NCBI GenBank assembly: GCA_038496445.1
Contig: JALMLS010000289.1
Location: 110,598 to 174,597, forward strand
DNA from: Trichosphaerium sp. ATCC 40318
Taxonomy: Eukaryota > Protista > Tubulinea
Direction of reading: 5' to 3'
DNA length: 64,000 bases
In this document: piece after piece, positions 1 through 51,768 of the stretch
How positions within the stretch are numbered: the first letter of the stretch is position 1
Layout of the letters: the number at the start of each line of letters is the position of its first letter
Made by a program: the position numbers and the translations under genes
The notes under the pieces: model-generated
What the model saw: the letters and a program-made list of their open reading frames with translations, nothing else
Told to the model about the DNA's origin: nothing
Database searches by the model: none

Positions 1-3000
1 CTGAAGGTTGATAACCTGGCGTATAACTCGTTGCAGGTATGGTAGAAACAGCAGGACCTGGGCTACCATATCCAGCATATCCACCACGGTTAGGTGTGTT
101 TGGCTGTGTGAATCCTGTAGCACCTCCGCGCTTTGGTCTGGACCTTGTATTGCTACGTTGTGATACTCCAGAAGCAGTTGGTACTGTGGAATTTTCTGTT
201 GTGAATGGGAAAGCTGGTGGACTCTGTTTGAGACCAAGAGCGTTGTAAACACGATCAAGAAGTACACCACCTTCTGTTTTTGTGAATTTTGGGTCTCTCA
301 TATGCTCCAAGTACGGCATAGCTGCTTGAAGCCTTCCTTGAGATGCCAAGATCTTGGCATATCTTTAAGAGAGTAAGTATACGTCATTTTAAACGAATTG
401 GAACGCACTCTGTGTATTTTGAAGCAAGAAGAGAAGAAACTTCTGTAGGTGCATTAGCATGAGTTAATATCTCCACACGCTCAATTAAATCTTGTAGATC
501 ATCCAACGGGTTAACTGATCGTTTCTTTTCCTTTTTTTTAAAAGTTAGATAAGGACGCATTGCGTAGTTAAGTCAATAAACGACAAAACGAAAAAAACAG
601 AACACTTTGAAGCATGCGTACTTTTTGAAGCCAAAACTCAATAGCTTTGTCATTTTTACGTGCACATATATAACACGTCAAGGCATTGTAAAAATTACCA
701 GTTTTATCTTGTGATAGGCGATCTCCTAGAGTCTCACATAGCTCAGCAGCTTCTTCTGGTGTTGCATAGCAAATAAATGTAGCAAGTGCTTGCCGCCAAT
801 ATTTTAGCTCTACATCTGCAGCAATACGCTTAAAGTCATTGTTTACAATAGCAGAAACTAATGTCATAAAAGGTCTCTTTTTACGTTGTGCTTTGAGGTA
901 GCTCGCCTGAGAAAACGTCAGATTTGATCCTATACTCTTTTTTTTCACAATGTACCTGCGCTAGGTTCCATAATGAAGCGTCTGGCGATGCCTTAGCAAT
1001 AACCAATGCATCCGCATAACGTCCTACGCGAAAGCAAGCCTCTACAGCACCACGTAGGTTACCAACCATCAAAGATCTTCAAAACAAGTTAGAAAAGTAA
1101 TTAAACTATTAATGAATACCTTGCTATAGCTGTTTCAATCTTATCAGCACTTTCAAACCTCATAGGCGTTGATTTTCTCTTTTTAATTTTTGTTGGTGTC
1201 TGTAGTTGTTCCATAGTATCAAAAGCAGATGTTTCGCCTTCTTCACCAATACCAAAACCATCTGACGCTGTTTTTAAACAGAATAAGCAACAAAAAAAAA
1301 CATGAAGAATGAACAAAAAAATCGACTTTTTGTTTACCTGACACTGCTTCTTTAACTGGCTCTTCGTACTCTTCTTCATCTTCAGGATTCTCCAAAAGAC
1401 CTTCTCCAGGGTACTTAGATAGAAATTTTGTAACTTCCTCAGCGACTTTATCAGGTGCAAACCCAAGGTATTTCATTAAATGATCTCTATTTTCTTCTGC
1501 ATCAAATGTTGCTCCAAGGAATCCCCATATTTGTTTTTCTCCTTTGTCCTTACAGTTCTCGGCTTTCTGTACGCAATACTCTCTGTAGTTTGCATTTTTG
1601 AGTACATTCTGAAGAGCATCAGCGCGCTTAGCGACTTGATTTTCTGTAACAACTGTCGACACCTAAAAAGGGGAAAAAAATCAATACAACAGACCAACAT
1701 AGAAGTCTTTCGAAAACGTACTTTAACGCTTGTTTTAGCTGCTGTGATAAGTTTACCACCAAATCCGAATGTGGCGCTGCAAGGTCGCTAGTATAAAATC
1801 AGAAGAGGTTGAGAGCAAATTGAGACATACAGCTAACCATCTTGGTGGTTTTTGAAGTACCATGCCTTCAGTACCAATATCTACAAGCGATAGAACTTTA
1901 ATCTACAAAAAACCAAAAATTAGCATTACAGAAAGAATAATCATTTTGACTTGCCTTGTTCTCTAGAGAAGCTGCTGAAGCAACGGCATTTATACAAGGA
2001 GACCATTGTACATCAACATTCCATTTAGCAGATGTTTCGACCTTAAGACATAAATAAGCTAAAGAATCTTTGTTGTTTTTGAATAGGGAATTAAAAAAAA
2101 AAGAGTTGTTTACCTCGCAAAGCACTTCTCCTGTTGATACATCCCAACATAATGTTTTATTATCCTTACCACTCGATAATAGTAAATTTGTGTCAACATC
2201 ACACCAAGACAGAGATAGTACACCCTTAGTATGTCCACGGAAAGTCTACAATTAAAAAAAAATTAAATACAACTTCAAACAAAACATGTCTTGAATCTAT
2301 CATCAACACGGCGTAAAAAGTACCTTGATAGGTCCAGCATATGTATTCTTTAAATCCCACAATTGAATAACTGGATTATTATCGTCTTCAGATGCAGTTA
2401 GAAGTTGTACATCCTAACAAACAGCATAAGAAAAAAGACAAACAAAATGTCAAACAAAAAAAAAAAAAAATACGCACAGCTGTAGGGCTCCAAGCCATAG
2501 CTTTACATTTACCGATAGAATCAGCAAAACTAATGATATGACGTCCTTTTCTCAAGTCCCAAATAGCAGTAAAACCATCATGAGAGCATGATCCGAGGAT
2601 ATGTGGTACTTTCTTATTCCATGACACGCAACTAATCTTTCCTGAGTGAGGAGACTGTGGTGTTTTCTGAACTGGTTGTGCTGGATTCTTTACGTCCCAA
2701 ATTATAATCTAAGCGTAATATAAGGTATATTTAGTGAAATGTAGTGTGTACTTTGCCGCTAGTATCACCAGAAGCGAGAAATGATTTATTGAAAGCATTA
2801 AACTCTAAAGCGCCTACTGGTCCTTGGTGTTGTATTGGTGCCGATAATTGAGACTTGGAAATGTCTCCTCTGCAAAAAACGTTGGCAAAACTTTCTAGTT
2901 TTTTTGGAGTTGTTTACGTACCCATTTATAAACGGAGAAGGGTTATATAGTTGAACAGCGCCATTAGAAAAACCACCAGCAATAATACCGTATGGTGTCG

Positions 3001-3238
3001 CTGGAGTGACGTGTCCCCACACTAGCCTGTGCGCACGCTCTGTAGTAGAAATTTTACCAAGGGAACGCATTTCTGACGATCGAGCCTTTAAATTCAAGTC
3101 AAATAACTCTACAGTGCCAGAGGCATCGAAATCGAGCGACATTGTTCCATGAAGTGTAGCTGTCGCCAAGTAACCCGGATGCTGTGTGCAAGGGCTCCAG
3201 GCCACTGCGCTTGTGAGATTTACCTCCTTTAGCTTCAT
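1..3238 (-). CDS. SEC31: COPII outer coat protein Sec31 (WD40 N-terminus, ACE1 region, start of Pro-rich region); multi-exon, runs off the left edge
   Basis: Exons translate to [103 protein letters not shown] and [12 protein letters not shown]. All are Sec31 hallmarks. Confidence 0.96.
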
Positions 3239-3359: not shown

Positions 3360-6701
<3,342 letters not shown>

Positions 6702-7083: not shown

Positions 7084-9407
7084 ATGGCTTTTTCTACTCA
7101 TAGTGCAGTTGCACTTTGTGTTTTAGCTATGCTAGCACTAAATGGTACGCAAAACTTGTTGAATACGCACTATACGTAATTACGACTGCATTAAAACCTT
7201 AATACTTAAAGCCTCTTGCTTTTGTTTCCATGCTGATTGTACAGCTTTCTTTGTAGTTTAAACTAACGATTACGCACCTTTACGCTATCGGAAACGTAAA
7301 ACGAATCAAATGCAAGAGTTTGCAACCAAATCCTCGTATTTTTTTTTGTTCTCTTTTCTTTGTACACTATTCCAATCTTTATCGTTGCTTTGTACTGTTA
7401 TTTGTATTTTCTCCGCTAATACGATTATTAGTTACTGCGGACTTGTTCAGCGACGATTTCTTTGGCGATAAAATTGGTACCTTACGCCGCGAAACAGAAC
7501 AAAATCATCCGTGGTTTAAAACAAACACAAGAGGCGACCTCACAACAAGACTCGCTAGACCAAGACCAAAGAGTCAAGAAGAGCTTCTAATGAAGTTAGA
7601 CCCAACCCTTTTACGTCAAGCAGAACAAAACAGACAAATGAAGATCGAGTTGATCAGAGTAAACCAAGAGCGCTTGAAAAACGGCGAACCTCCTCTGTCT
7701 TTGCAAGAGTATACTGCTCAACAAGGGGGACGAGTGGGCGGTGGTAACCCTGAGGATCCATATGGCAACTACCCTGAGGACCCAAACGGCAACTATCCTG
7801 AGGACCCTAATGCTGGCGGAGATGGCGATATTTGCGCTGATCCTACTTTCGATCCTTGCAGTTATGATGGTTATCCTGCAGAGGATCCATGTCAGTTTTA
7901 CGCAGACAATCCTGATAGACAACCCGGTGATTGTCCAGCTGGGGGCGACAGTCTGGGTGCTGATCCAAGAGGCGGTGATCCTGGTGCTGATGATGGCGAT
8001 ATTTGCGCTGATCCTACTTTCGATCCTTGTAGTTTTGATGGTTATCCTGCAGAGGATCCATGTCAGTTTTACGCAGACAATCCTGACAGACAACCAGGCG
8101 ACTGTTCAGCTGAAGGTGCCGGTAGGGGTGCAGGTCCGGCCAATCCAGATGACATGGGCAACTATCCAGAAGAGGGTGATGACATGAGTAACTATCCAGA
8201 TGACATGGGCAACTATCCAGATGAAGGTGACGACATGAGCAACTACCCGGATGACATGAGCAACTATCCACAAGAGGGTGACGACATGAGCAACTATCCA
8301 GATGATATGGGCAACTATCCAGAAGGCGGCGACAGCGGTAGAGACGATGGTTTTACTGATCTAAATACTGATGCCGCTCAAAGACGCTATCAACAAGAAT
8401 ACGAAGACACCTTTGGTTCTGATGACGATATGAGTAACTACCCAGAAGAGGGTGATGACATGAGAAACTATCCAGATGATATGAGCAACTATCCTGAAGA
8501 AGGCGATATGGGCAACTATCCAGAAGAAGGTGATGACATGAGTAACTATCCAGATGACATGCGCAACTATCCAGAAGGCGACGACAGCGGTAGAGACGAT
8601 GGTTTTACTGATCTAAATACTGATGCCGCTCAAAGACGCTATCAACAAGAATACGAAGACACCTTTAGTACTGATGACGATTACAGAGATGATAGTGTTG
8701 GCCCTGACAACTGGGGAGAATCCGAGTTAGTTCCGGACAGACGGAGCACTCAAGATGATGTTTCCGATATGGAAGGAGAAGGACGACACCGCGAGTCCCA
8801 CTCAAGCACAGTCAAAACAACAAGCCGCAATAACATAATGTCCGAATTGCGAAAATTTGGCCAACAGGTCAGAGAAAAGGCAAAGGAAAAACTACCTGAA
8901 GTTGTTAGTACAGTGATAGATCATGTCACCGGTAACAACCAAGATGATGATGAAGAAGATATTGAACATCCACAAAACCGAGTTGAAGTTGGTAGAGGTA
9001 GTGTTGAACATCATCAGGATGATTTTATGGAGCATACAGTAAGGGAACCACGACAACATCTTAGCGAAAGGTTGAGAAGATTCAGTGGACGCCTATCAGC
9101 TGCCAAGGATACCAACAAGGTAGCTGTAGGTCCACGCCCATCCTCTTTGACACCTGTGCTACTCTACGGTATTATTGCTACTGGTACGTTTAAGTTCCTT
9201 TGACGTCATTGAAAACTGATCCTTTTTGGGATAGTTTTGCTTTTTTTCTTTGTGTTTTTACAGCTCTCTTATACTCTTTTTTTAGTTCTCTTCGTTATTA
9301 TTGTTGCTGCTGTTGTTGGTTTCCTTGTTATTCGTAAAAGACAGCATATTGTTCAACGTCAAAAGAACTTTGATGGTGATATGGCTTATCAACAAATGAT
9401 CGCTTAA
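7084..9407 (+). CDS. Acidic repeat-rich type I membrane protein of unknown family (signal peptide, 2 Cys modules, NYP repeats, C-terminal TM, short tail); 3 exons
   Basis: Exon 1 encodes MAFSTHSAVALCVLAMLALN and splices to the long exon starting at about 7432. The last exon encodes VLFVIIVAAVVGFLVIRKRQ..AYQQMIA*. Confidence 0.85.
7821..8105 (+). repeat. Two near-identical 114-bp coding modules (7821-7934 and 7992-8105) encoding DGDICADPTFDPCS[Y/F]DGYPAEDPCQFYADNPDRQPGDC
   Basis: Direct sequence comparison. Confidence 0.95.
8148..8666 (+). repeat. Coding tandem array of DDM[S/G/R]NYP(EEG) units, with two identical 85-bp spacers (8330-8414 and 8582-8666)
   Basis: Recurrent gatgacatg-ag/gg-caactatcca units; the two spacers match base for base. 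Confidence 0.95.
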
Positions 9408-49937: not shown

Positions 49938-51768
49938 TTACAAGATAAAATTTTGGCACTTTTGGTGTACTATTCCTTTACCATACTCATCGTAGACACT
50001 TTTCTCGATCCATTTAGAATCAAAACCAACTTGAGATGTAACAATACATGCTCCAATCCATGATGAACGTTTTCGTTCTGGACTAGCTTTAACATTAATT
50101 TTTGCCTTTGGAGATAGTTTTTTTAGATCAAAAGTAATCCTATCGGCTATTCCAGGTAGCATTGTATTACCACCAGCAAGTACAATATTTCTAAATAGCT
50201 CCTACAAGCTAGTGAATAACAAAAGCAGAAATCGCTTTTTTTACAACTAAAATCTTTTTGCAATGGCATGGAAAAGCCAAGAATAAGGCTTCTTGTAAAA
50301 CCCAACTACGATATTGATTGTAAAACATCGTTGAGCAAACAAAAGGGCCTAGCCCAACAAGCGAAAAACGTCGAACAAAATCTGACAAGAAAAAAAAAAG
50401 GGAAAGAAATTGTTCTTTGTGTACCTTACGCATCTTCTTTTTGCATTTCATTACAGTGTTGAATATTCCCTGAGAAATACCTTGTTCATTAACACCAGCT
50501 ATACTAGGATCCATTAAAATCTCAGCACACTTCATACGCTCTTCTTTAACTGTTACACAACTGCCATCGTCTAGCTCGTATGTCTTCTGATTATTATCTT
50601 TAAACACTTCAAGTTCGCTTTCATATCCCTTGGCAGCGACATATCCATGTTTTTCTTTTATATCACGTACAATATCAATACCTTGTGATGTATTGAACTC
50701 ATAGCCGGCTTCACAAAGAAGCCCAGTCAAGTATTTTGTTACATCTTTACCTCCAAATGCAGCTTTTCCAATTGAGTCTGTTACAATCTTTCCATCGTAC
50801 ACAGGAACATAGCTCGTAACACCACCTCCGGATGAGACTATCAAACCTCTATTTGTTTGACTACAAGCCGCTATAAAAGGAGCTTCCAAAGATATATAAA
50901 AGTATGGCACTTCAAATGTTTCAAACAGCATCTCAATATACTTTTCTCTAGCAGACGTAAACAACAAGATTCGCATGAAAGAAAAAAAACAAAAGAACCT
51001 TCCCCAAACAAGAAATATCATTCTCTATTTGGTGTAACCAAAACAGTACTGATAGTCAAAAAAAAAACCAACAAAAATCACACATTGACGATATGATGAG
51101 AAAAAGAAAATTTCAGGAATGCACAAAACTTCAAAGTCAAAAAAGGCATACCTATCAGTATTTGACGACATTGGTGTATCCATTATTAAAACAGGGTGTT
51201 CATTAGCTTCTATACGCATTTCGGTTTTAAGCGTGTAATCCAAGATACGCTCTATACTTTCCCAGTTTGTAACTTGTCCGTTTTGTATTGGGTATGACAA
51301 GTTCAATGAGCCGCTCTTTGATAAAGCGTTATCACCAATATAAGTACCTAACTTCTTTGTAAGCAGATATAGATACATAATACAAACTACAATCTCATAG
51401 AAGGTTGACAAAAAACAACACTCGCCCAACTCTTTATAATCCTTTTGTGTCTTTATCCACAGCTCACAATTGCACACAATCATATGTTTTGCGTGTAACG
51501 AGGAATGCAACAAAAAGGATTATAAATAGAGGTCCTTTTCCGTTGAGCCAATGTGCAAAAAATCAAATACGAGATTATCTGAATTTGTTTAATGGGAATC
51601 ATAAATCAGAGTAGTATCAGTTGTGTTTTTTGCGCTATCTTGTGCGTGTTGGGCGCTATTAGTACCAATCACGGTTGGAAATATAGTATGGGGAGCGCTA
51701 GAACTACTAAAACCGGCTAGGATATTACTAGAGCCCATAGATATGATTATCGGAGTCGTTTCTTCCAT
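49938..51768 (-). CDS. Divergent actin / actin-related protein, multi-exon
   Basis: LAGF..AP..IFPTVIG, YIGDNAL, LSYPIQNGQVTNWE, EHPVL, EMLFETFEVP, IVRDIKEKHGYVA, NIVLAGGNTMLPGIADR and PERKRSSWIGA. Confidence 0.93.

Follow-up and report, generated by a model that had tools for sequence, protein, structure and literature searches.

Silicanin-1 (Sin1) of diatoms is a type 1 membrane protein of the silica deposition vesicle, the luminal domain of which is cleaved and built into the mineral (PMC5525289), and calcifiers generally have acidic proteins, the protist Amphistegina included (PMC11648905). Here, we analyze a gene at positions 7084-9407 on the + strand of a 64,000-nucleotide (nt) stretch of DNA from Trichosphaerium sp. 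ATCC 40318 (assembly GCA_038496445.1, contig JALMLS010000289.1, positions 110,598 to 174,597; the whole stretch is called the window below) and compare its product to these and related systems. A three-exon model fits the locus and codes for a type I membrane protein of 644 amino acids (aa), and the gene is an intact single-copy nuclear gene of this marine amoeba, restricted to its lineage and without a paralogue. Coral acid-rich proteins (CARPs), skeletal aspartic acid-rich proteins (SAARPs) and the Asp-rich proteins of molluscs are unusually acidic matrix proteins, and in the skeletogenic cells of sea urchins, spicule growth is regulated by the small, acidic type I membrane protein P16. Trichosphaerium forms a fibrous, multiporous organic test, and its schizont form carries a coat of calcite spicules (PMC10521059; PMC11575492, the latter by scanning electron microscopy and X-ray diffraction). 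Because the genus has both an organic test and calcite spicules, the idea that the protein is a Ca2+-binding matrix component of the coat or spicule is biologically reasonable.

By analogy, we regard Sin1 as the best architectural precedent. Both proteins are lineage-restricted and combine a signal peptide with a large luminal domain that contains Cys, one transmembrane (TM) segment and a cytosolic tail of ~20 aa without known motifs. Sin1 differs in its NQ-rich domains with 18 conserved Cys and its RXL domain, in its association with silica and not calcite, and in its conservation across diatoms; no homology to it emerged, as a HMMER search of 1.84 billion representatives gave no match besides two repeat artefacts. 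The CARPs and SAARPs, the mollusc Asp-rich proteins and the foraminiferal test proteins (PMC11648905) resemble the Trichosphaerium protein in being secretory, of low isoelectric point (pI), rich in Asp and Glu, repetitive, disordered and taxonomically restricted, and in occurring in organisms that form CaCO3. However, these proteins are mostly soluble and not membrane-anchored, the classic members are far richer in Asp, and none is homologous to it. Sea urchin P16 (named in PMC2909932) shares the single-pass topology, the acidic ectodomain and an origin in a cell that forms calcite spicules, but it is much smaller and of animal origin, and no similarity was detected.

Gene model and protein architecture

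The window has many short exons and a GC content of ~38%, and it is eukaryotic nuclear DNA. Exon 2 of the gene sits in its longest open reading frame (ORF; 627 codons, with a runner-up of 343), and both this frame and the repeats that it contains are far beyond chance. The ATG of exon 1 lies in an A(-3)/G(+4) context, and the long frame is regained only if intron 1 is phase 1, with further in-frame acceptors possible upstream of the one chosen. For intron 2, an acceptor at 9263 would shift the frame into a Cys-rich nonsense tail, and read-through would truncate the TM helix; the three-exon model is therefore the coherent one. The donor G|GTACG is identical at both introns. Since the hexamer GGTACG is enriched three-fold in the window (35 occurrences versus 11.2 +/- 3.2 in dinucleotide shuffles, none of which reached 35) and marks exon ends in several genes there, G|GTACG appears to be a favored splice donor of this genome. 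The gene is composed as follows.

7084..7144 (+): exon 1 (20 aa), with the ATG at 7084, most of the signal peptide (MAFSTHSAVALCVLAMLALN) and then the first base of codon 21
7145..7431 (+): intron 1, 287 nt, GT..AG, phase 1, with a pyrimidine-rich 3' end and a CTAAT branch-like site
7432..9183 (+): exon 2, 1752 nt, coding for the entire ectodomain and for the opening third of the TM helix
9184..9285 (+): intron 2, which splits the TM helix; 102 nt, GT..AG, phase 1, strong polypyrimidine tract
9286..9407 (+): exon 3 (40 aa), with the remainder of the TM helix, the tail and a TAA stop at 9405-9407

The joined product, which we used only for counts and pI, has 644 aa, a mass of 71.9 kDa, a pI of 4.18, and contents of 14.1% Asp and 7.5% Glu. 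The predicted topology is that of a secretory type I, single-pass protein with a cleavable signal peptide and an ectodomain of ~570 aa. Hydropathy averaged over 19 residues on the Kyte-Doolittle scale (KD19) exceeds 1.6 only at the signal peptide and at the TM helix (aa 596-620), after which RKRQH follows. Signal cleavage is likely at V-T-A|D, after residue 23. The sole N-x-S/T sequon (N20-V-T) lies inside the signal peptide, leaving the mature protein with none. The signal peptide, the basic, helical N-terminal region and the single TM segment that the first-pass annotation had marked are all where it placed them, and its description of the protein as hyper-acidic holds for aa 126-470, in which Asp and Glu make up 26-32% of residues, but not for the N-terminal and juxtamembrane parts, which are basic to neutral; over the whole protein, the figure is 21.6%. 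The parts of the protein, from the predicted cleavage site onward, are these.

7440..7745 (+): basic helical N-terminal region, aa 24-125, pI 9.2, following the predicted cleavage site
7747..7807 (+): about two and a half PEDPxGNYP units with the first two NYP; period 24, 89% matches
7818..7949 (+): 4-Cys Asp/Pro-rich module 1, aa 150-193, with C155, C163, C174 and C188
7989..8120 (+): 4-Cys Asp/Pro-rich module 2, aa 207-250, with C212, C220, C231 and C245
8148..8336 (+): repeat block A, seven DDM[G/S]NYP heptads, in which 10-aa and 7-aa units alternate
8337..8414 (+): 26-aa unit A (GRDDGFTDLNTDAAQRRYQQEYEDTF), identical to unit B at 78/78 nt
8415..8588 (+): repeat block B, six DDM[S/R/G]NYP heptads
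8589..8666 (+): 26-aa unit B, second copy of the GRDDGF...EDTF unit
8667..9155 (+): juxtamembrane C-terminal part of the ectodomain, ~160 aa, of mixed charge, containing His, in which two long helices are predicted
9156..9183 (+): start of the TM helix, VLLYGIIAT and then the junction codon's first base
9286..9332 (+): remainder of the TM helix, aa 605-620, completing it
9333..9407 (+): 24-aa basic cytosolic tail, RKRQH...MAYQQMIA, and stop (full tail: RKRQHIVQRQKNFDGDMAYQQMIA)

The earlier reading of the protein proves right on each point that can be counted. NYP occurs exactly 15 times, 2 of them in the PEDPxGNYP units upstream of the Cys modules and 13 in the DDM[G/S/R]NYP heptads. The heptads are alternately spaced by EEG-type tripeptides, and each block of ~84 aa is closed by one of the two 26-aa units, the long duplicated unit already noticed in the first pass. 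Tandem Repeats Finder (TRF) reports a 51-nt period with 3.6 copies and 88% matches. The two Asp/Pro/Cys modules, likewise marked earlier, each span 44 aa and share the spacing C-x7-C-x10-C-x13-C, giving the ectodomain eight conserved Cys.

Comparison of these duplicates to one another shows that the ectodomain arose through recent internal duplication. The two Cys modules are 90% identical at the nt level, and between their cores there are five synonymous codon differences and a single, conservative replacement (Y to F), whereas the 26-aa units do not differ at all; blocks A and B share 93% of their aligned nt. The 13 heptads all keep M, N, Y and P, the codons for D, Y and P vary synonymously, and the amino-acid changes all fall at position 4 (G/S/R), except for a single D-to-G change at position 1 in the one heptad that reads GDMGNYP. 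Because the differences between internal duplicates are mostly synonymous, the peptide sequence, and not merely the DNA, is under constraint.

AlphaFold2 run on exon 2 as a single sequence found no fold and gave a mean predicted local distance difference test score (pLDDT) of 46, with 466/583 residues (about 80%) below 50; the pair of Cys modules alone also gave a mean of 46. Helices were modeled at exon-2 residues 57-82 in the N-terminal region, with pLDDT up to 94, and in the juxtamembrane part at residues 465-499 (block-mean pLDDT ~50-70) and 524-558 (37-47). Single-sequence AlphaFold2 is a weak predictor of disorder, and an orphan allows no alignment; with this in mind, the ectodomain, a polyanion of pI ~4, is predicted to be mostly disordered except for the two small 4-Cys modules, which are presumably disulfide-bonded.

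The search for relatives

The first-pass annotation had recognized no family, and the sequence, profile and structure-based searches made here all came back blank. Their queries were exon 2 or its parts. Pfam and NCBIfam gave no match above cut-off for exon 2 or any sub-region, the best profile matches being SpoIIIAH (E 0.28) and HIPIP, the latter with E 0.0087 and, over 16 residues, 16.8 bits where the cut-off is 22. A sequence search of the Protein Data Bank with the whole of exon 2 and three parts of it returned nothing below E 0.78, a word-indexed search of 5.8 billion proteins returned no match, and the ESM Atlas was blank for exon 2 as a whole and for its C-terminal 154 aa. Scans of metagenome and viral contigs produced pattern matches, among which tblastn confirmed no relative. 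The paralogue search that the first-pass annotation had proposed was run over the 70.28-Mb assembly and found no paralogue of any part: protein searches with exon 2 and its three parts hit only this locus, as did two degenerate DNA patterns describing NYP arrays and DPC...DPC. An exact look-up of the product of the longest ATG-started ORF found no record, a result that is uninformative on transcription.

The full HMMER pass over the 1.84 billion cluster representatives yielded two matches only, and we reject both as relatives. One (P0001) is a protein of FN3 repeats that matches by chance, at ~28 bits per stretch, with 18/49 identities and 0/4 Cys aligned to Cys; its total score is inflated by 11 repeats, each with a DP-SFDGYP-like string. 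The other (P0002), which at E 6e-5 looks the less spurious, is a CAP/SCP-like secreted protein of 455 aa, the similarity of which is confined to its own acidic low-complexity repeat. It is secreted and carries seven GGDLSNLPDDWSTWLNN repeats of an acidic 17-aa type (GGDLSNLPDDW, compared with GDDMSNYPDDM in the orphan) with similar composition and period, but it lacks the orphan's Cys module, TM segment and flanking domain, and we read the resemblance as convergence or chance. A further likeness is to thrombospondin type 3 (TSP3) repeats (PF02412), which also have short Asp/Pro/Asn-rich stretches between disulfide Cys (cf. ...FYADNPDRQPGDC...); PF02412 gave no match in the orphan at E up to 10, and the sequence, when read through, lacks the DxDxDGxxDxxD motif.

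On these results, we consider the gene an orphan relative to current public sampling. As a kind, the protein is already familiar, being of the lineage-specific acidic, repetitive, disordered kind of the secretory pathway. The proposal that the locus represents a novel structural system does not stand, as the gene is present in a single copy, has no paralogues and is not linked to any partner genes.

Weighing a coat or spicule role against its alternatives

We tentatively favor the reading, possible more than probable on the sequence at hand, in which the orphan is a membrane-anchored Ca2+-binding protein of the coat or spicule. The protein would act as a membrane-tethered polyanion facing either the cell exterior or the lumen of a vesicle, be it secretory or mineral-forming. 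There, the DDMxNYP array, rich in Asp and Glu, would bind divalent cations, above all Ca2+, and concentrate them, and would thereby couple the membrane to nascent calcite or the organic test. Like the luminal domain of diatom silicanin-1, the ectodomain may also be shed into the matrix. Consistent with membership in the acidic biomineral matrix class, which is a functional class and not one of homology, the protein is secretory, of low pI, Asp/Glu-rich and repetitive. We further speculate, by analogy and as an unlikely elaboration, that it may be a stage-specific acidic membrane protein of the vesicle that gives rise to the hollow calcite spicules of Trichosphaerium, in which DDMxNYP would nucleate or shape calcite and the ectodomain would be shed into the spicule matrix. 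On this narrower reading, the gene would offer a first molecular handle on calcification in Amoebozoa, and the protein would be convergent with the diatom silicanins and sea-urchin P16. Several observations weigh against a coat or spicule role. There is no EF-hand, TSP3 or LDL-A match in Pfam even at E up to 10, and no cation-binding motif of any known type turned up. Its overall Asp and Glu content is moderate beside that of the classic Asp-rich matrix proteins, many acidic disordered ectodomains are unrelated to mineral, and the disorder itself was predicted by the weak single-sequence method. Moreover, the sequenced isolate is a smooth, non-spiculate gamont in which spicules never appeared over more than 6 years of culturing (PMC10521059). 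Were the orphan to prove part of the machinery of amoebozoan spicule or test formation, it would have evolved independently as a further case of the vesicle-membrane acidic disordered protein known from diatoms, echinoderms and corals. It could also serve as a marker for the disputed gamont/schizont switch of the life cycle. Otherwise, the gene encodes just another surface protein of low complexity, specific to its lineage and only locally of interest. The literature that we found on Trichosphaerium spicules, calcite and test consists of ecology, taxonomy and the genome paper, with no paper on proteins behind amoebozoan spicule or test formation.

The type I topology and the short tail starting with RKRQH would also fit an endo-lysosomal or phagosomal membrane protein, a functional analogue of the LAMP type that would provide an acidic, protease-resistant disordered lining and be sorted by the YQQM motif, in an amoeba that is phagotrophic (PMC10521059). 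The first-pass annotation had the tail end in YQQM as a YxxPhi sorting signal. The tetrapeptide is indeed present (9387-9398, Y639), but the tail ends in YQQMIA, placing the motif six residues from the C-terminus, and shuffling the tail produces a YxxPhi motif in 22% of cases, which is chance level. LAMP-type coats are glycan-based, which counts against this explanation for a mature protein that has no N-glycosylation sequon, and Pfam found no LAMP luminal domain in the orphan; we consider a lysosomal role doubtful. Alternatively, the orphan could be an adhesive or cross-linked coat protein, with sulfation or oxidation (to dihydroxyphenylalanine, DOPA, or di-Tyr) of the 13 Tyr that lie in acidic DDMxNYPEEG contexts gluing or hardening the fibrous test. 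Every repeat Tyr indeed lies in a strongly acidic context, with 4-5 acidic and 0-1 basic residues within +/-5, and known Tyr sulfation sites have a similar one. The genome also contains a tyrosinase-domain locus, but nothing connects a tyrosinase to the orphan protein. A six-frame search of the genome gave no TPST-type PF13469 match, a weak negative given short exons and an incomplete assembly. Such a Tyr-modified coat protein is, on balance, rather improbable. The tyrosinase-domain match, the only one in the genome (G000:C100:198248-198517, - strand), contains two TGA and one TAG in its six-frame translation and thus either spans introns or is broken.

Processing and lack of function remain to be weighed. 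The first-pass annotation had noted several RR dibasic sites and had suggested a possible polyprotein cut at them; in the corresponding scheme, a membrane-tethered precursor would be cut by a kexin/furin-type convertase into secreted repeat peptides. At least three proprotein-convertase P-domain loci exist in the genome, and RR does occur inside each 26-aa unit. However, RR is found 5 times versus 2.8 expected (P=0.14) and dibasic pairs of any kind 8 times versus 5.1 (P=0.13), both at chance level, and none separates the heptads, such that cutting would yield a few heterogeneous fragments and not repeated peptides. With its TM anchor and with dibasic pairs neither enriched nor placed between heptads, the orphan also does not fit the granin or prohormone type, and we consider cleavage into repeat peptides highly improbable. 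Finally, the locus could be a young, fast-evolving ORF with little function or none, namely a coding minisatellite that expanded within a lineage-specific gene and is possibly unexpressed, as the missing relatives, the very recent duplications (100% and 90-93% nt identity) and the fact that no public protein or transcript-derived protein surfaced might suggest. Against this, a frame of 644 codons is intact across two introns, the signal peptide, TM segment and stop-transfer are coherent, and synonymous differences outnumber replacements between the duplicates, while the absent self-match is uninformative. We consider a functionless ORF distinctly improbable.

Genome context and neighboring genes

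The published draft of Trichosphaerium sp. comprises 70.87 Mb in 710 scaffolds with 37.69% GC, and it has an unusual 22 copies of the small-subunit (SSU) rRNA gene on different scaffolds (PMC10521059). In the assembly searched here, which has 642 contigs and ~38% GC, we observed at least 10 full-length SSU genes of ~2.65 kb, one per contig (C481, C177, C410, C581, C75, C6, C176, C46, C34 and C592), several of them no more than a few kb from the end of a contig. This rDNA is dispersed, perhaps subtelomeric or extrachromosomal, and does not form one tandem array.

Three other genes were noted in the window; the two that neighbor the orphan gene are of ordinary kinds.

384-3238 (-): WD40-like and Sec16/Sec31-like exons, with a TPR_Sec16 match at E 0.0021 that falls short of the Pfam cut-off; likely to be a COPII coat gene
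3469-6700 (+): MCM helicase gene of several exons, with the MCM P-loop domain at 5179-5300 and the AAA-lid at 6016-6339
49938-51513 (-): Arp-like (actin-related protein) gene with several exons, from ORF translations only

The MCM helicase gene stops ~380 bp upstream of the orphan gene, and its donor at 4083 is also G|GTACG.

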